DNA of 14,815 nt from Perkinsela sp. CCAP 1560/9 (GCA_965644495.1 CBFFSA010000087.1:1-14815), one strand, 5' to 3'; positions 1 to 12,543 are shown, counted from the first letter of the stretch. Numbers and translations are program-made. The notes: generated by a model from the sequence alone, not told the origin.

Positions 1-48
1 ATGAGAACTCTTTCCTCTCACCAAAAAATAAAAATAAAAAGAAGAAAC

Positions 49-1071
49 CTTGTCCAGTATAGTTGATTCCAATTAAAAGAGCCTTTTTCTTTCCAGTCCC
101 ACTTTTTTTTGTTTTTTACATGAATCAAGAAAATAATAAAAAAAAACTCACTCATCCAAAAACTCTTCTTCCACAACCCAGAAAAAGAAGAAAACAATTA
201 AAAAAAAAACAACAATTAAAAATTACCCAATTGTAAACGGAGCACCATAAGCTCCAGCACCTGCATAACCAGGAGCCCCATAACCAGGAGCCATAGGAGC
301 AGCAGAAGGAACTCCATAAGGAGAAGGAACACCGCCATAAGGAGATCCACCAGGAGGAGGGGCACCATACATTCCTCCTCCTGCTGCAGGAGGTGGGTAT
401 CGTTGACGATCATCTCCTCCAGGTGGAGGAACAACACCATACATTCCTGGAGATGGCATCCCTCCTTGTGGTGGGGGGTATGCACCTCCTGCTGGAGGAT
501 AAGCCCCTCCTGGTGGTGGGTGTTGTTGGGGAGGATATCCACCCGCTCCTGGAGGAGGAGGATACATGCTTGATTGGGGGGGAGGATACATTCCTCCTCC
601 TGGTGGAGGTTGTTGAGGGGGATATGCCCCTCCTGGTGGAGGGTATGCTCCAGGTGCAGGTGGATAAGCTCCTCCAGGGGCAGGGGGGTATGCTCCTGGT
701 TGTTGTTGTGGAGGATACGCTCCACCTCCTGGTGGTGGTTGTTGTGGAGGATAACCCCCGTATGGGTCTACAAAAGATATGATGGAATTAAATTTTGGTG
801 TTCAAATTTTTAATTCATGAAAACCCAAAACCCAAAACCCAAAACCCAAAACCCAAAACCCAAAACAAATCAACCCAAATCACACAAAAAAATAATAATA
901 ATTTTGATGAATGCAAACCAGGAGGGGCAACTCCGTACTGGGGAGGAGGACCACCACCAGCTCCTGCTGTTTTTTGAGAGGAAAAAAAAATGAGAAAAGA
1001 AAATAAAAACCACCAAAACTCAAAAGAAAGAAAGAAAAAGAAAAGGAGGTACCAGGGGGTACGTTGAACAT
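49..1071 (-). CDS. MCA1: Type I metacaspase (peptidase C14B), 5' part; long Pro/Gly/Tyr/Gln-rich prodomain; gene runs off the left edge
   Basis: Exons (minus) 1071-1053, 966-919 (or 963, NAGNAG acceptor), 767-227, 101-49, all GT-AG and phase-consistent. Translation MFNVPPAGAGGGPPPQYG...(YPP repeats)...APFTIGGTGKKKALLIGINYTGQ. TGxKKALLIGINY is the characteristic start of the metacaspase p20 domain. The catalytic His/Cys lie outside the window. Confidence 0.88.
820..866. repeat. Perfect (AAAACCC)6 plus partial tandem repeat, TTTTGGG on the minus strand, in metacaspase intron 2
   Basis: Six exact 7-mers at 820-861 followed by AAAAC. Confidence 0.95.
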
Positions 1072-1419
1072 GTCGAGTGAGGGGATGAAACAAGCCTCTT
1101 TCTCTTTGGTGAACACCAAAAAAAAATAGACCTCAAAAAAATCTTTTCGGATTATCTATCTCGAAAAATCTAAAAATCTGAAATAAAAAAAGACAAAAAA
1201 TCTTTGAATCAGCGTCATGACGTGTGTGACCATGATTGGTCAAATTTTTCCCCACGTTGGCGAAAATAGGGCTCTCCCAAATTCTGTTCGTCTTTTTTCG
1301 GTTTTTTTTGAAGTGTAAATTACAGTCAAATTTGATCTCGGTTTTCGCTGAGCAAACAAACCCTTTTTTCGCTTTCACACGCTCGTTCACAACGAAAAAC
1401 ACAAACAGCCGATCAACTC
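1072..1419. promoter_or_regulatory. Divergent promoter region between metacaspase and DDX3, with palindromic motifs
   Basis: 348 nt between opposing ATGs. Contains TTTGGTG-AA-CACCAAA (1105-1120), CGTCATGACG (1213-1222) and TGACCA-TGAT-TGGTCA (1227-1242, which includes a reverse CCAAT). Confidence 0.55.
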
Positions 1420-4437
<3,018 letters not shown>

Positions 4438-4684
4438 TTCCAAGACCCCCTTCCCACCAATTTGCTATCTGTGGTTTCTCTCCTTCTATGCGTGATCTCC
4501 AGTCCCTTCCTCAATCCTTCCCTATTAATTTACCAGGTCTTCCCGCTCAACTTCTAAAGGCCTCTTTATCTCTTTTTTATTCGAAAAAAAGAAAACCTTT
4601 TTTTTTGGTTTCTTTTTTTTTGTTTTGGAGATGGGAAGGAATGAAAAATCGACCGGATCGATTGTAGATGGAGAATTGTGTTTT

Positions 4685-4715
4685 TCTCTCTCTCCTCTCT
4701 CTCTCTCTTCTCTCT
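4685..4715. repeat. Imperfect (CT)n microsatellite in the convergent 3' region
   Basis: tctctctctcctctctctctctcttctctct. Confidence 0.8.
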
Positions 4716-4880
4716 TTTTGAGAAGAATTTTTGTGTGGAGGAAGAGTTTTTCGATAATCTCGGTGGTGAAGTTGATAGAAGTCTTGGTGGGAACCTTTTT
4801 TCGCTTTCTTTTTTGCGTTTTCTTCTCTGTGTGTTTTTGCACTTTTTCTTGGATCTTTCGATAAAGTGTATTTTATTCCA

Positions 4881-6067
4881 TCAATTTGTTAGTAATTTTA
4901 ATTGTTCTTTTAAGTCTTCGATGGGTCGACCATAAGTTTCTTCATAAAAAGACCAATCTTGACTCCATTCATTCAAAAGTCTTTGATAAATTCTCCAGAA
5001 AGATTTGAAGTTTTCGAGGATCAGAATTTCAGACAATGGTCCCAATTGTTTTTTCCCTCCTCCAGCTTTCTTTTTTGTATCTTCTTGTTTTATCTTTTTA
5101 GAATTTTCTTGAGAGGGTTTGTGTTGTGGTTGGGAAGCAGCGCCGCTCTTCTTCTTCTTGAGATCACCCCACAGATCAACTTGTGTTGATTGCCCAAGTC
5201 TGATCTAGAAAAAAAAAAGACACAGATTTAACAAAACAACTCCAAAACCAAACATCAGCATTCAAACAACAATATTTTCCCACCCAAAATTAATTAATTT
5301 CTATCAAAAATGAATTATCAAAAAAAAACACACAACACCTGTTTGCAAACAAGACAAGCAACAATCAACATTCTGAAAGTATGGGCAATCACTTTCTTTG
5401 CTTCTTTTAACATCCCCTTTCCTGCTTTCTTTCCTGCTACTTGCCAATCACGTTCAACTTCAGTCATAACAGATGCAACAAATCTATCCAAATCAATTTG
5501 AAGAAATGGGAAAGAAATATATTTGCTTGTTTGTTTTTCGAGAAGTCGATGAGAAGGAGGAAGGAGAAAAGCACAGAGGGTTGTCTGGAAAGTTTGTTCT
5601 TCAAGTTGTTTCTGAAACCCAGAGACTGTGTAACAGATGGCATCAAATTGATTGTTATGAATCGTCCATTTATCTTTTTTGCTTTGATTCACTCTATTTG
5701 TTGACAAAGTGAGAAAAAAAAAGGGGGGGAAACTCTCAAAACTCTCAAAGGAACAGACAACAAACTTTGATTGCTTCGATAAATTCACAACAAGAATAAC
5801 ATCCCAATCTGAATCAAAAGAAGCGGTCCCCCACAATCTAAATATCATTCAAAAAACGATTTCGATGAATCGATGTTTGAAAAAAGACAAGAAAAAAGAG
5901 AAAAAAAAAACAGACCTGGAACCAACTAACCAACAAGCTAAAACCTCAGAAGATGACACTTTAAGTTGAGAAAAGAGGGTTTCCAGTTGAAACATTTTTG
6001 AAGCATTTTGCTCTTTCATCTGGTGATAAATTTCAGATTCAATGGCAACATCATCATCATCAGCCAT
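4881..6067 (-). CDS. Nucleotidyltransferase, DNA polymerase beta superfamily, with helical C-terminal domain, about 300 aa, 4 exons
   Basis: Exons (minus) 6067-5916, 5837-5766, 5693-5339, 5204-4881 (903 nt, GT-AG, frame-consistent). Splicing builds WLVGSRLWGTASFDSDWDVILVV, the hG[GS]x9-13DxDh signature. A probable third Asp lies in NQFDAICY, followed later by AKKVIAHTFRML. AATAAA follows just after the TGA stop. Confidence 0.85.
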
Positions 6068-6094
6068 CACTGGGAAAGCGAAAAAGAGAAAAAG

Positions 6095-6210
6095 TTTGGT
6101 GTCCCGATGAAAAAAATGAGGGACACCAAAATAAATCACAAAACCCCGCTTTCTTTTTTCACTTTTTTCTCAATCCCGCTCCACAAAACCGAAAAAACGA
6201 GAGAAGAAGA
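6095..6210. promoter_or_regulatory. Short bidirectional promoter/5' leader with inverted repeat TTTGGTGTCCC-N14-GGGACACCAAA; block re-used upstream of the array copies
   Basis: Perfect 11-bp arms at 6095-6105 and 6120-6130, between divergent ATGs at 6067 and 6211. Homologous blocks at 7711-7812 and 9227-9346; only the proximal part is present at about 10926-10989. Confidence 0.7.
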
Positions 6211-7629
6211 ATGGCTGACCACTTCAAGACAACTCTGAACGGTTCTGACCACGAAAAACTTCACGAATTGTGTTCATTCACTTACAAGGAACAAGCTGTG
6301 TGGTATTTGAATGCCTTTTGGGAATTTGGATTGAAAGAACAAGCTGAAAAGCTTTGGGATTATGCTCAAAAAGCCTCTGTAATTGACAACGCAAAAGCAA
6401 CTGGAAATGCTCTTGATGAAATGGAAGCTCACCGCTTTTTGGAAGCTTTTCATGAGGTTTATTGACTTTTTTTTCTTTTCAAACATTTTTTAACAATCTT
6501 TTTCTTTTCTCACACTTTCTTTTCAAAGGCACACACAGTTTTGGAAATGCGTTCTCAATTGAGAAAGACCGGTGCTTTGGGAGAAAACGAACGCCCAAAA
6601 GAAGTTCCTTTGACTCATTTCTTACTTTTTAAATATGGGAACTCTTGGAAGACACTTGTCAATGCTCCCCAAGGAGATAATTCTGCCAAAATTGCTGAAG
6701 TTCAAGACAAATTGCAAGCTGTCCAAGAAGCTTTTGATGCTTCAACCAAAGCTGATGCAGAAGCCACTGCTGCGTTGAAGGAATCTGTTGCTCGTGAAGC
6801 AACAGCGAAATCAACTGAAGCTGCAGCTCTTGCTCGAGAACAAGAAGCTGTTGCAACTGAAACAGAAGCCAAAGCAAGAGAGGCTGAGGCCAAAGCAAAT
6901 GAGGCAGCCGCTGTTTCAACTGAGAAAGAAGCTGTTGCTCGAGAACAAGATGCGAAAGCTGCTGAAGCTCCTTTCAAAGCCGCTGAAGCTCCTTTTAAAG
7001 CTGCCCAAGATGAAGTCGAAGCTGCTTTGGCTGAAGTGAAAGCTCAAGAAGATGCTTACAACAAGAAAACTGAAGATCTCAAAAAGGCTTCTGAAGAAGG
7101 AGGTGTTGTTTCTCGAAATCGTGCGAAAGTGAGTCTTGATGCTCATTTGGCTGAAGATCCTTTACCTCTTCGAAAAGCTAAGATCACATTGGAAGCTGCA
7201 AACAAAAGAGCTGAAAAGGCTCGTGCTCCATTCTTGGAAGCTCGTGCTCCATTCCTTGCTGCGACTGAAGCCGCTGAATCTGCTCGTAAGATTGCTGAAG
7301 ATGCTCGAAAACAAGCTGAATCTTCTCGTCAACAAGCTGAATCTGCTCGACAAGCTGCAGAAGCATCTCGAAAACAAGCTGAAGCTGCTCGTCAGGCTGC
7401 TGAAGCTGCTCGAAAACAAGCTGAAGCTGCTCGTGCTGCTGCTGAAGATGCTAAAGCTCGAGCTGAAGCTGCTGTTCTTGCTGCTCAAGAATCTGTGAGG
7501 GAAACTGAAGCTCTTTTGGCTGATTTGATGGCGAATCCTGGAAGTGGACATGGTGCTTTGTTTTGGGTTGAGCGAGAGTTGACAGAAAAGAAGAAATTTA
7601 TGCCTGTTTCTAAGGGTGGTATTCGTTAA
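6211..7629 (+). CDS. ABP34-like (calcium-regulated actin-bundling protein family, often annotated TolA-like) with extended coiled coil, copy 1, 448 aa
   Basis: Exons 6211-6456 and 6529-7629. Blocks EQAVWYLNAFW, GNALDEMEAHRFLE, VPLTHFLLFKY, EVKAQEDAYNKKTEDLKKASEEGGV and GSGHGALFWVERELTEKKKF occur in the same order as recalled Dictyostelium ABP34 blocks QQAVHFLNAYW, GNDLDFDIALYFYE, VSFLEYLLYQY, EVNKRIRAYEEEKARLTEESKIPGV and GSSAGAIWWMNRDLEEKKKR. Confidence 0.85.
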
Positions 7630-7812
7630 TTTGAAATCCAAACTCAAAAGAAATGAAATGAAATAAAAAGAAAAAATAAAAAATAAAAATCACAGAAAAT
7701 CGAAAAAAGCTTGGTGTCTCAAGAAAAATGAGGGACACCAAAATAAATCACAAAACCCCGCTTTCTTTTTTTACTTTTTTCTCAATCCCGCTCCACAAAA
7801 CCGAAAAAAAGA

Positions 7813-9152
7813 ATGGCTGACCATTTCAAGACAACTCTGAACGGTTCTGACCACGAAAAACTTCACGAATTGTGTTCTCTGACTTACAAGGAACAAGCTG
7901 TGTGGTATTTGAATGCCTTTTGGGAATCTGGATTGAAAGAACAAGCTGAAAAGCTTTGGGATTATGCTCAAAAAGCCTCTGTAATTGACAACGCAAAAGC
8001 AACTGGAAATGCTCTTGATGAAATGGAAGCTCACCGCTTTTTGGAAGCTTTTCATGAGGTTTAATCTCTTTTTGGATGAGATATTGTTGATTTTAAAGTC
8101 TGACATTATTTTTTTCTCACTCTCTCTTTTCAAAGGCACACACAGTTTTGGAAATGCGTTCTCAATTGAGAAAGACTGGTGCTTTGGGAGAAAATGAACG
8201 CCCAAAAGAAGTTCCTTTGACTCATTTCTTACTTTTTAAATATGGGAACCCTTGGAAAACACTTGTCAATGCTCCCCAAGGAGATAATTCTGCCAAAATT
8301 GCTGAAGTTCAAGACAAATTACAAGCTGTCCAAGATGCCTTTGATGCTTCAACCAAAGCTGATGCAGAAGCTTCTGCTGCGTTGAAGGAATCTGTTGCTC
8401 GTGAAGGAGCAGCAAAAGCGTCTGAACAAGAAGCACTTGCAAGAGAGGCTGATGCCAAAGCAAATGAGGCAGCAGCTGTTTCAACTGAGAAAGAAGCTGT
8501 CGCTCGAGAACAAGATGCGAAAGCTGCTGAAGCTCCTTTCAAAGCTGCTGAAGCTCCTTTTAAAGCTGCCCAAGACGAAGTCGAAGCTGCTTTGGCTGAA
8601 GTGAAAGCTCAAGAAGATGCTTACAACAAGAAAACTGAAGATCTCAAAAAGGCTTCTGAAGAAGGAGGTGTTGTTTCTCGAAACCGTGCGAAAGTGAGTC
8701 TCGATGCTCATTTGGCTGAAGATCCTTTACCTCTTCGAAAAGCTAAAATTACATTGGAAGCTGCAAACAAAAGAGCTGAAAAGGCTCGTGCTCCATTCTT
8801 GGAAGCTCGTGCTCCATTCCTTGCTGCGACTGAAGCTGCTGAATCTGCTCGTAAGATTGCTGAAGATGCACGAAAACAAGCTGAATCTTCTCGTCAACAA
8901 GCTGAATCTGCTCGACAAGCTGCAGAAGCATCTCGAAAACAAGCTGAAGCTGCTCGTCAAGTTGCTGAAGCTGCTAAAGCTCGAGCTGAAGCTGCTGTTC
9001 TTGCTGCTCAAGAATCTGTGAGGGAAACTGAAGCTCTTTTGGCTGATTTGATGGCGAATCCTGGAAGTGGACATGGTGCTTTGTTTTGGGTTGAGCGAGA
9101 GTTGACAGAAAAGAAGAAGTTTATGCCTGTTTCTAAGGGTGGTATTCGTTAA
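7813..9152 (+). CDS. ABP34-like coiled-coil protein, copy 2 (shortest), 420 aa
   Basis: Exons 7813-8058 and 8136-9152; same intron position (FHE|AHT); near-identical to copy 1 apart from heptad indels. Confidence 0.85.
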
Positions 9153-9346
9153 TTTAATAAATAAAAAGAAAATTTGAAACCAGAAAGAAAAAAGATTTCA
9201 TCAAAAATGACTGAAGGGAATCTCCCTGGTGTCCTGAGAAAAATGAGGGACACCAAAATAAATCACAAAACCCCGCTTTCTTTTTTCACTTTTTTCTCAA
9301 TCCCGCTCCACAAAACCGAAAAAACGAGAAGAGAAGAAGAAGAAGA

Positions 9347-10852
9347 ATGGCTGACCACTTCAAGACAACTCTGAACGGTTCTGACCATGAAAAACTTCAT
9401 GAGTTGTGTTCATTCACTTACAAGGAACAAGCTGTGTGGTATTTGAATGCCTTTTGGGAATCTGGATTGAAAGAACAAGCTGAAAAGCTTTGGGATTACG
9501 TTCAAAAAGCCTCTGTAATTGACAACGCAAAAGCAACTGGAAATGCTCTTGATGAAATGGAAGCTCACCGCTTTTTGGAAGCTTTTCATGAGGTTTATTG
9601 ACTTTTTTCTTTTCTTTTTGGAATGAAATATTTTTGATTTTAAAGTTTTGACATTTACTTTTCAAAGGCACACACAGTTTTGGAAATGCGTTCTCAATTG
9701 AGAAAGACTGGTGCTTTGGGAGAAAACGAACGCCCAAAAGAAGTTCCTTTGACTCATTTCTTACTTTTTAAATATGGGAACTCTTGGAAGACACTTGTCA
9801 ATGCTCCCCAAGGAGATAATTCTGCCAAAATTGCTGAAGCTCAAGACAAATTACAAGCTGTCCAAGATGCCTTTGATGCTTCAACCAAAGCTGATGCAGA
9901 AGCCACTGCTGCGTTGAAAGAATCTGTTGCGCGAGAAGGAGCAGCAAAAGCGTCTGAACAAGAAGCACTTGCACGAGAAGCAACAGCGAAATCAACTGAA
10001 GCTGCAGCTCTTGCTCGAGAACAAGAAGCTGTTGCAACTGAAACAGAAGCCAAAGCAAGAGAGGCTGAGGCCAAAGCAAATGAGGCAGCCGCTGTTTCAA
10101 CTGAGAAAGAAGCTGTTGCTCGAGAACAAGATGCGAAAGCTGCTGAAGCTCCTTTCAAAGCCGCTGAAGCTCCTTTTAAAGCTGCCCAAGACGAAGTCGA
10201 AGCTGCTTTGGCTGAAGTGAAAGCTCAAGAAGATGCTTACAACAAGAAAACTGAAGATCTCAAAAAGGCTTCTGAAGAAGGAGGTGTTGTTTCTCGAAAT
10301 CGTGCAAAAGTGAGTCTTGATGCTCATTTGGCTGAAGATCCTTTACCTCTTCGAAAAGCTAAGATTACATTGGAAGCTGCAAACAAAAGAGCTGAAAAGG
10401 CTCGTGCTCCATTCTTGGAAGCTCGTGCTCCATTCCTTGCTGCGACTGAAGCTGCTGAATCTGCTCGTAAGATTGCTGAAGATGCTCGAAAACAAGCTGA
10501 ATCTTCTCGTCAACAAGCTGAATCTGCTCGACAAGCTGCAGAAGCATCTCGAAAACAAGCTGAAGCTGCTCGTCAAGTTGCTGAAGCATCTCGAAAACAA
10601 GCTGAAGCTGCTCGTGAAGAAGCTGTGAATGATCGAAAACAAGCTGAAGCTGCTCGTGCTGCTGCTGAAGATGCTAAAGCTCGAGCTGAAGCTGCTGTTC
10701 TTGCTGCTCAAGAATCTGTAAAAGAAGCTGAAGCTCTTTTGGCTGATTTGATGGCGAATCCTGGGAGTGGGCAAGGTGCTTTGTTTTGGATTGAGCGAGA
10801 GTTGACAGAAAAGAAGAAATTTATGCCTGTTTCTAAGGGTGGTATTCGTTAA
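9347..10852 (+). CDS. ABP34-like coiled-coil protein, copy 3, 476 aa
   Basis: Exons 9347-9592 and 9668-10852; intact frame and same motifs. Confidence 0.85.
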
Positions 10853-10989
10853 TTTGAAATCCAAACCCAAAAGAAATGAAATAAAATAAAAATAAAACCA
10901 AGCCAAATTGTTTTGCCTTTTTGAACCCGCTTTTTTTTTACTTTTTTCTCAATCCCGCTCCACAAAACCGGAAAAACGAGAGAAGAAGA

Positions 10990-12543
10990 ATGGCTGACCA
11001 CTTCAAGACAACTCTGAACGGTTCTGACCACGAAAAACTTCACGAATTGTGTTCATTCACTTACAAGGAACAAGCTGTGTGGTATTTGAATGCCTTTTGG
11101 GAATCTGGGTTGCAAGAACAAGCTGAAAAGCTTTGGGATTACGTTCAAAAAGCCTCTGTAATTGACAACGCAAAAGCAACTGGAAATGCTCTTGATGAAA
11201 TGGAAGCTCACCGCTTTTTGGAAGCTTTTCATGAGGTTTATTGACTTTTTTCTTTTCTTTTTGGAGTGAAGCATTTTTTAACAATATTACACTTTTCTCA
11301 CACTTTCTTTTCAAAGGCACACACAGTTTTGGAAATGCGTTCTCAATTGAGAAAGACTGGTGCTTTGGGAGAAAATGAACGCCCAAAAGAAGTTCCTTTG
11401 ACTCATTTCTTACTTTTTAAATATGGGAACTCTTGGAAGACACTTGTCAATGCTCCCCAAGGAGATAATTCTGCCAAAATTGCTGAAGCTCAAGACAAAT
11501 TACAAGCTGTCCAAGATGCCTTTGATGCTTCAACCAAAGCTGATGCAGAAGCCACTGCTGCGTTGAAGGAATCTGTTGCTCGTGAAGGAGCAGCAAAAGC
11601 GTCTGAACAAGAAGCACTTGCACGAGAAGCAACAGCGAAATCAACTGAAGCTGCAGCTCTTGCTCGAGAACAAGAAGCTGTTGCAACTGAAACAGAAGCC
11701 AAGGCAAGAGAGGCTGAAGCATTGGCCAATGAGAATGAAGCAAAAGCAAGAGAAGCTCAAGCTGTTTCAACTGAGAAAGAAGCTGTTGCTCGAGAACAAG
11801 ATGCGAAAGCTGCTGAAGCTCCTTTCAAAGCCGCTGAAGCTCCTTTTAAAGCTGCCCAAGACGAAGTCGAAGCTGCTTTGGCTGAAGTAAAAGCTCAAGA
11901 AGATGCTTACAACAAGAAAACTGAAGATCTCAAAAAGGCTTCTGAAGAAGGAGGTGTTGTTTCTCGAAATCGTGCGAAAGTGAGTCTTGATGCTCATTTG
12001 GCTGAAGATCCTTTACCTCTTCGAAAAGCTAAGATTACATTGGAAGCTGCAAACAAAAGAGCTGAAAAGGCTCGTGCTCCATTCTTGGAAGCTCGTGCTC
12101 CATTCCTTGCTGCGACTGAAGCTGCTGAATCTGCTCGTAAGATTGCTGAAGATGCTCGACAAGCTGCTGAAGCATCTCGAAAAGAAGCTGAATCTTCTCG
12201 TCAACAAGCTGAATCTGCTCGACAAGCTGCAGAAGCATCTCGAAAACAAGCTGAAGCTGCTCGACAAGCTGCTGAAGCTGCTCGAAAACAAGCTGAAGCT
12301 GCTCGTGAAGAAGCTGTGAATGATCGAAAACAAGCTGAAGCTGCTCGTGCTGCTGCTGAAGATGCTAAAGCTCGAGCTGAAGCTGCTGTTCTTGCTGCTC
12401 AAGAATCTGTAAAAGAAGCTGAAGCTCTTTTGGCTGATTTGATGGCGAATCCTGGAAGTGGGCAAGGTGCTTTGTTTTGGATTGAGCGAGAGTTGACAGA
12501 AAAGAAGAAGTTTATGCCTGTTTCTAAGGGTGGTATTCGTTAA
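10990..12543 (+). CDS. ABP34-like coiled-coil protein, copy 4 (longest), 490 aa
   Basis: Exons 10990-11235 and 11317-12543; intact frame and same motifs. Confidence 0.85.

Follow-up and report, generated by a model that had tools for sequence, protein, structure and literature searches.

Matched heptad indels in the two arms of nine ABP34-family paralogues of Perkinsela sp. CCAP 1560/9, and the graded reach they may confer

Length changes by symmetric heptad insertions and deletions (indels) are known from the hairpins of bacterial chemoreceptors, in which both arms change around a conserved tip and length classes such as 36H and 40H are distinguished (passages of PMC5907407, where Alexander and Zhulin are cited for the symmetric indels). 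Among actin cross-linkers, the length of alpha-actinin and spectrin is set by a modular rod in which the number of modules varies among members (PMC4550062). The actin bundler ABP34 of Dictyostelium has an EF-hand N-terminal domain followed by three actin-binding regions (PMC10533516), and its C-terminal half (residues 124-295) alone forms paracrystalline actin arrays (PMC3203848). The present analysis concerns four tandem genes of the ABP34 family at positions 6211-12543 (+ strand) of a stretch of 14,815 nucleotides (nt) from Perkinsela sp. CCAP 1560/9 (GCA_965644495.1 CBFFSA010000087.1:1-14815; hereafter the window, positions being counted from its first letter), together with five paralogues located on another contig of the same assembly. 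In all nine genes, two arms of heptad repeats separated by a conserved domain differ in length by the same four residues. The nine genes are interpreted, with a probability of about three in four, as ABP34-family cross-linkers with an intramolecular antiparallel stalk, the arms of which are changed by compensated indels and which would thereby acquire a graded reach.

With the chemoreceptors, these proteins share a long antiparallel hairpin lengthened by symmetric heptad indels, and the models obtained here match the chemoreceptor structures 2ch7 and 3g67. The proteins are however unrelated and have no domain in common; the MCPsignal family (the CheA/CheW-binding tip domain) was absent from the Pfam matches at an expectation value (E) of up to 1. 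In chemoreceptors, two hairpins associate into a four-helix bundle, and signalling arrays are kept apart by length class, whereas here a single chain, with a predicted two-helix stalk, occurs in nine lengths of near-identical paralogues in one genome. The resemblance is one of fold and of mode of length change only. The stalk of dynein and the arms of SMC, Rad50 and MukB likewise consist of an intramolecular antiparallel coiled coil holding a binding module at a set distance (in dynein, a filament-binding tip); their lengths are conserved within each type and are not known to be graded among paralogues, and they have no sequence relation to the genes described here. In alpha-actinin and spectrin, three-helix repeats of ~110 residues give steps of several nm in a rod formed by an antiparallel dimer, whereas the unit is here one heptad per arm (~1 nm) within one chain. 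The topology of ABP34 itself is the same (N-terminal domain, helix, turn, Pro-kinked return helix and C-terminal tail), and short members of the family are of ABP34 size (for instance P0115, 294 amino acids (aa), arms of 31 and 27 residues), but the arms of the window genes have 90-129 residues, those on the other contig up to 206, and several gene copies of graded length lie in tandem arrays, without an EF-hand recognised by Pfam. Within the literature searched, no description of matched heptad indels or variable stalks was found for the ABP34 family or for any actin cross-linker; an earlier reading of the window (hereafter the original prediction) had likewise considered length-graded stalks as undescribed for this family.

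Each of the four window genes consists of two exons separated by a short, AT-rich intron (72, 77, 75 and 81 nt in genes 1-4). Exon 1 encodes 82 aa in all four and ends in FHE, followed by a GT donor; every intron ends in AG, and exon 2 opens with AHTV and encodes 366, 338, 394 and 408 aa, followed by a stop codon. The FHE/AHTV junction is backed by the contiguous homologue P0001, to residues 1-89 of which exon 1 aligns end to end with 75% identity, and in which exon 2 begins at residue 90. Total lengths were obtained as arithmetic sums of exon lengths (searches and folds used single exons or database proteins), and these sums give the 448, 420, 476 and 490 aa that had been announced for the spliced products of genes 1-4.

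Arm lengths (L1 for the first arm, L2 for the second) were counted as residues between anchors, namely the end of the N-terminal domain (QGDN), the 72-aa mid-domain and the C-terminal NPGSG segment. In genes 1-4, L1/L2 are 108/104, 94/90, 122/118 and 129/125. Expressed as variable heptads, this corresponds to 5, 3, 7 and 8 units in arm 1 and to 7, 5, 9 and 10 in arm 2, and by this count the end of arm 1 lies 135 aa before the start of arm 2 in all four genes. The original prediction had given the same counts and a list of heptad units, both of which are exact between the motifs that it used as limits, and its rule that arm 2 is always arm 1 plus two heptads holds in 4/4 genes, where L1 - L2 equals 4 residues. 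A genome scan showed that the assembly contains exactly nine PF18060 genes (65 bits in that scan), four in the window and five on contig C73, in a cluster extending over 1-9100 (+) and 16300-17900 (-) (loci L013 and L014). The C73 paralogues are ~55% identical to the window genes, have three exons each, with an extra intron inside arm 1, and carry their variable heptads at the base-proximal ends of both arms. Their L1/L2 are 206/202, 185/181, 164/160, 171/167 and 150/146, so that the difference of 4 is found in 9/9 genes, at nine different lengths. For four distinct lengths exactly matched, the permutation probability is 1/24 in the window, and arithmetic gives 1/(4! x 5!) when the five C73 paralogues are included. 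The earlier view of the locus as a four-member length-graded set thus stands as regards the grading, but the window holds only four of nine graded paralogues.

The coding DNA of the four window copies is 96-98% identical, with 66-88% identity in the introns and 45-88% in the flanks; between copies, the synonymous divergence (dS) is 0.06-0.09 and the ratio of nonsynonymous to synonymous divergence (dN/dS) 0.06-0.34. All four copies are distinct, live genes under purifying selection. At the DNA level, a single uninterrupted, in-frame block in each arm separates every other copy from gene 3 (Table 1), the arm 1 blocks of genes 1 and 2 being at different sites, and the four genes together require at least three length events per arm. 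Since the arm DNA is made of arrays with a 21/42/63-nt periodicity, slippage or unequal recombination is the obvious source of such indels. A mechanical coupling of the two arms through an inverted DNA repeat was considered and rejected, only a 14-nt palindrome being found. The arms are not inverted repeats of each other, and therefore no single DNA event can change both; with a separate block in each arm, this upholds the proposal that the arms changed through independent events. The idea that paired blocks lie exactly opposite each other holds only roughly, the blocks of gene 1 overlapping to within ~5 residues and those of gene 2 being offset by ~3 heptads. Given this last offset, any arm 1 heptad seems able to pair with any arm 2 heptad.

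The matching of the arms extends to the family. Among 115 close homologues with all anchors (L1 from 31 to 129), 77 have the exact offset of 4, compared with 11 on average and no more than 25 when L2 values were shuffled (10,000 trials), and those that break the rule are nearly all off by whole heptads. The rule is kept in 17/18 proteins encoded on genomic contigs longer than 5 kb, versus 60/97 on short transcript contigs. Four of the transcript-derived proteins (P0057, P0063, P0112 and P0113) are Trinity isoforms of one gene and show all combinations of L1 = 87 or 101 with L2 = 69 or 83, which points to chimeric assembly; chimeras are probably present in the family's transcript assemblies made from short reads, and arm lengths derived from these should be treated with caution. 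On a tree built from the non-repeat blocks, 36 sister pairs comprise 10 in which the arms are unchanged, 13 in which both have changed equally and 13 in which they have changed unequally, most of the latter including an unbalanced transcript. Parsimony requires at least 49 length changes among 86 balanced proteins, and the 19 distinct balanced lengths imply at least 18 changes on any tree. An independent sample was drawn from the best 150 of 1,403 family clusters (50% identity, E up to 0.001, 1.84 billion proteins). The 54 new representatives with complete anchors among these 150 gave a correlation of r = 0.976 between arms with a slope of 0.96, and the 51/54 lying within a few residues of the offset gave r = 0.9996 and a slope of 0.994 over L1 = 24 to 166. 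A slope of about 1 had been expected among homologues, and 0.96-0.99 was obtained. A further correspondence between the arms is that the number of tip-adjacent proline heptads (APF type) is mirrored (0/0, 1/1 or 2/2) in 113/119 proteins. This heptad is doubled in both arms of all four window genes (6955-7004, 8520-8569, 10136-10185 and 11806-11855 in arm 1, with ARAPFLE pairs starting arm 2) and serves as a marker of hairpin register close to the tip.

An assembly artefact, in which the four copies or their repeat numbers would result from mis-assembly of a repetitive locus, might be suspected in a tandem array with internal repeats, the more so as transcript assemblies of homologues do yield chimeric arm combinations. 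It is nevertheless hardly credible: each copy has its own synonymous changes, its own intron length and diverged spacers, every block keeps the reading frame, equal changes in arms ~400 nt apart in 9/9 genes on two contigs are not what an artefact would yield, and the 17 of 18 proteins that keep the rule lie on independent genomic contigs.

Named relatives come from amoebozoan transcriptomes, e.g. of Mayorella, Vannella and Stygamoeba, the best match being 82% identical. A 99-kb ENA metagenome contig from a related organism (L015) carries, at 7837-11497, a tandem pair of intronless genes, P0008 and P0009, with arms of 122/118 and 129/125, that is, those of genes 3 and 4. Larger architectures are also found: in P0245 (668 aa) a glutathione S-transferase domain is fused after the ABP34-like module, and P0204, P0230 and P0236 (~940 aa, arms 166/160) have an N-terminal extension of ~390 aa without Pfam match.

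Structures were predicted with AlphaFold2 for the full-length protein P0001 (82% identical, with the arm lengths of gene 4) and for the exon 2 product of gene 2. The predicted local distance difference test (pLDDT) score was 92.3 for P0001 and 90.3 for gene 2, reaching 95-98 in the arms. In the P0001 model, a helical N-terminal domain is followed by a helix at 141-300, a turn at the GG pair, a helix at 303-318, a three-residue kink at the conserved EDPLP motif, a helix at 322-465 and a last helix at 472-487, with 160 helical residues out and 160 back. The gene 2 model has helices at 52-176 and 179-307, the latter with a kink at 195-197, and 125 residues out for 126 back. Both models predict one long antiparallel helical hairpin, with the conserved, presumably actin-binding segment at the tip and the N-terminal domain and C-terminal helix at the base. 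The original prediction had foreseen an antiparallel two-helix stalk with the variable blocks facing each other; the first part is borne out by the models, the second is not general, given the offset in gene 2. Structural matches over the whole stalk include arms of the SMC/MukB type among the top ones (Smc 5nnv, Z 11.9 over 252 aligned residues with a root-mean-square deviation (rmsd) of 9.3, and the MukB elbow), as well as the two chemoreceptors cited above, YscO and the p85 inter-SH2 coil. Such Z values for long helices reflect a common arrangement, not kinship.

The heptads themselves have a frame common to both arms, in which position 3 is Ala in 74% (arm 1) and 79% (arm 2) of units; at position 0, 52% of arm 1 units have Glu and 45% of arm 2 units have Arg, or the residue is hydrophobic in both arms. 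This pattern fits a tight Ala-cored antiparallel pair, in which a Glu-Arg seam may be deduced from the residue preferences. The arms might alternatively pair between molecules, as antiparallel or parallel dimers, or stay isolated as single alpha-helices, which charged Ala/Glu/Arg/Lys heptads can form in a stable manner; AlphaFold2 tends to pack helices, and the test on separate arms reported below is weak. This is very improbable in view of the mirrored proline heptads, of the conservation of Ala at one position in both arms and of the model confidence reached there. A homodimer with arm 1-arm 1 pairing needs no equality of the arms, yet the offset is constant from L1 = 24 to 206, and Dictyostelium ABP34 is a monomer. 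The intramolecular antiparallel hairpin in which only compensated indels are kept, as originally proposed, agrees with the models, the constant offset and the correlation among homologues, and this structural interpretation is well supported.

As to the identity of the family, PF18060 (F_actin_bund_C) is matched in 4/4 exon 2 products with 59.9-63.6 bits, for a gathering cut-off of 27, in keeping with the earlier assignment to relatives of the ABP34 actin bundler. A profile of 72 family members matches Dictyostelium ABP34 (4x3n, 295 aa) with an E of 3.3e-11 over residues 29-68, 134-205 and 240-295, so that the N-terminal domain and the C-terminal GAxWW...EKKK tail align as well. With Foldseek, the model matches 4x3n_A (E 1.6e-3, probability 1.00, template-modelling (TM) score by target 0.43, 196 columns, rmsd 5.0); the match is partial, the stalk being much longer here. 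A single-sequence phmmer search of the PDB with gene 3 exon 2 returned only designed helical proteins and did not reach 4x3n. With E values of up to 1 considered, Pfam gave no EF-hand family for exon 1, exon 2, P0001, P0115 or P0060. The loop aligned to the EF-hand of ABP34 has a 3-residue insertion, and His replaces Glu as the last calcium ligand, so that calcium control may be lost in the long-stalk members. The four genes are members of the ABP34 family by domain, termini and fold, without a canonical EF-hand.

The following mechanism may be proposed. The short hairpin of ABP34 would have been extended into a long stalk of two antiparallel helices within one molecule. The polypeptide would leave the N-terminal domain as arm 1, reach the PF18060 tip, turn at the GG pair and come back as arm 2, kinked by a Pro close to the tip, its short C-terminal helix and tail ending beside the N-terminal domain. 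Slippage or unequal recombination in the DNA, with its period of 21 nt, would add or remove heptads, and an uncompensated indel in either arm would displace the C-terminal helix from the N-terminal domain or force a bulge. Because both termini have to come together at the base, a heptad change in one arm would persist only if the other arm changes equally, and the difference between the arms would be constant because only compensated indels persist. With Ala at one core position of both arms and, at the other, Glu of arm 1 presumably facing Arg of arm 2, the heptads are generic; any two of them could then pair, the stalk could vary in steps of ~1 nm, and paired blocks would not have to be exactly opposite.

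An alpha-helix rises by 0.148 nm per residue, which gives stalks of ~18.5 nm for gene 2, ~20.6 nm for gene 1, ~22.6 nm for gene 3 and ~23.7 nm for gene 4 (stalk lengths were read from models for gene 2 and, through its proxy P0001, for gene 4); those of C73 would be ~27 to 35 nm. The strongest actin-binding site of ABP34 is reported to be that described by Lim et al. in 1999 at residues 193-254, which presumably correspond to the tip segment here, the other sites falling at the base. If this layout carries over, the tip would bear the strongest site and the base the others, and stalk length would set the reach between two filaments. By analogy with Dictyostelium ABP34, a function as a ruler of actin spacing is plausible. 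More specifically, the nine genes may constitute a vernier of single-chain cross-linkers, from ~19 to ~35 nm long and one to three heptads apart, each setting a different distance or geometry of the filaments and selected for both matched arms and distinct lengths, but this fuller proposal is a tentative one, held at somewhat less than even odds.

The main rival explanation accepts the matched arms and takes length itself to be neutral, the nine lengths being by-products of unstable 21-nt repeats. Slippage-prone arrays, the wide variation in the family (L1 from 24 to 206) and the lack of a monotonic order of lengths along the arrays speak for it, whereas 9/9 lengths are distinct, and coding sequences remain near-identical while introns and spacers have diverged, so that homogenisation has spared the length differences. 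Moreover, the closest relatives repeat 122/118 and 129/125, including in the tandem pair of another organism, and all copies are under purifying selection. Neutrality of length is on balance unlikely. Another reading would lay the stalk along one actin filament, which it would measure or stabilise in the manner of tropomyosin or nebulin. The stalk is Ala-rich with periodic acidic residues, the predicted 18-35 nm would span several actin subunits, and in the 2015 structure paper ABP34 is said to have been modelled on the side of the filament. The conserved segments are however at the two ends of the stalk in the models, the heptads in between are generic and exchangeable, the lengths show no quantisation at 5.5 nm or 2.75 nm but steps of single heptads, and ABP34, a bundler, has separate regions for binding actin (PMC10533516). 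This arrangement is considered improbable.

Several points weigh against the interpretation as compensated stalks of graded reach. The evidence bears on the matching of the arms and not on selection for stalk length itself, and it is by transfer from the distant ABP34 (structural identity 22%) that the proteins are assumed to bind actin, to be monomeric and to affect spacing. The arm-to-arm contacts were deduced from secondary structure and matched folds. When the two arms of gene 3 were folded as separate chains, the test was passed only weakly, with a score of 0.40 against 0.00 for the best of three controls (the runs agreed in at least 67% of contacts and partner pLDDT was at least 83); the mark of this test is reached by 51/78 solved complexes and 2/108 mismatched pairs, and scores of 0.60 or under comprise 5 of the 78 solved complexes and all 4 mismatches that passed. 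A simple charge complementarity, with an acidic arm 1 and a basic arm 2, was tried and fails, both arms being net negative (mean charge per heptad -0.49 and -0.26, arm 2 being net positive in only 6/119 proteins), which leaves no more than the Glu/Arg contrast at a given heptad position. A third of the close homologues break the exact offset, and although most of these come from short-read transcript assemblies, some unbalanced homologues may be real. Finally, the array and its repeat numbers are those of the assembly contigs.

The features of the array are listed in Table 1. Elsewhere in the window, a DEAD-box RNA helicase gene of several exons lies upstream of the array at 2572-4495 (+); its product has the Pfam domains DEAD and Helicase_C and a C-terminal tail rich in Gly, Arg and Tyr. 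A Pro/Gly/Tyr-rich open reading frame (ORF) with PPPGGAYPP-type repeats and without Pfam match lies at 223-591 (-). A telomere-like, intergenic and contig-internal repeat at 820-866 consists of the unit AAAACCC (GGGTTTT on the opposite strand) in 6.7 perfect copies. A tRNA scan of the window found none.

Table 1. Positions in the window of the exons, arms and tips of the four ABP34-family genes, and of the length blocks by which genes 1, 2 and 4 differ from gene 3
Feature	Position	Strand	Basis
Gene 1 exon 1, 82 aa, first part of the N-terminal domain	6211-6456	+	ATG at 6211, GT donor, alignment to P0001
Gene 1 exon 2, 366 aa and stop	6529-7629	+	AG acceptor before GCA CAC ACA; stop at 7627-7629
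Gene 1 arm 1, outgoing helix, 108 aa from QGDN anchor to tip domain, 5 variable heptads	6682-7005	+	Anchor alignment
Gene 1 hairpin tip, 72-aa mid-domain with GG turn and EDPLPL kink	7006-7221	+	PF18060, 63.6 bits, match at 7018-7224
Gene 1 arm 2, return helix, 104 aa	7222-7533	+	Anchors; 21/42/63-nt tandem periodicity at 7268-7490
Gene 2 exon 1, 82 aa	7813-8058	+	ORF and donor
Gene 2 exon 2, 338 aa and stop; total 420 aa, shortest stalk	8136-9152	+	ORF; AlphaFold2 model
Gene 2 arm 1, 94 aa, 3 variable heptads	8289-8570	+	Anchors
Gene 2 hairpin tip	8571-8786	+	PF18060
Gene 2 arm 2, 90 aa, 5 variable heptads	8787-9056	+	Anchors
Gene 3 exon 1, 82 aa	9347-9592	+	ORF and donor
Gene 3 exon 2, 394 aa and stop; total 476 aa	9668-10852	+	ORF
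Gene 3 arm 1, 122 aa, 7 variable heptads	9821-10186	+	Anchors
Gene 3 hairpin tip	10187-10402	+	PF18060
Gene 3 arm 2, 118 aa, 9 variable heptads	10403-10756	+	Anchors
Gene 4 exon 1, 82 aa	10990-11235	+	ORF and donor
Gene 4 exon 2, 408 aa and stop; total 490 aa, longest stalk in the window	11317-12543	+	ORF
Gene 4 arm 1, 129 aa, 8 variable heptads	11470-11856	+	Anchors
Gene 4 hairpin tip	11857-12072	+	PF18060
Gene 4 arm 2, 125 aa, 10 variable heptads	12073-12447	+	Anchors
Gene 1 versus gene 3, arm 1, 42 nt missing	start 9927-9939		
Gene 1 versus gene 3, arm 2, 42 nt missing	start 10588		
Gene 2 versus gene 3, arm 1, 84 nt missing	start 9971-9974		
Gene 2 versus gene 3, arm 2, 84 nt missing	start 10588		
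Gene 4 versus gene 3, arm 1, 21 nt extra	start 11715-11722		
Gene 4 versus gene 3, arm 2, 21 nt extra	start 12155-12160		

With a slope of 1 over a seven-fold range of lengths, the matched arms are among the cleanest demonstrations, from sequence only, that distant segments of a protein pair, and the family-wide rule offers dozens of independent compensated events. Compensated heptad indels, known in bacterial chemoreceptors, also shape a eukaryotic cytoskeletal protein, and the generic Ala/Glu-Arg heptads may be of interest for the design of length-adjustable antiparallel coiled coils. Studies of how the length of a cross-linker affects the spacing and the mechanical properties of actin bundles usually rely on unrelated proteins or on engineered spacers; here, paralogues with near-identical coding DNA differ almost only in stalk length, in 1-nm steps. 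If true, the vernier would amount to a set of molecular rulers provided by nature, with which the influence of cross-linker length on actin architecture could readily be tested.

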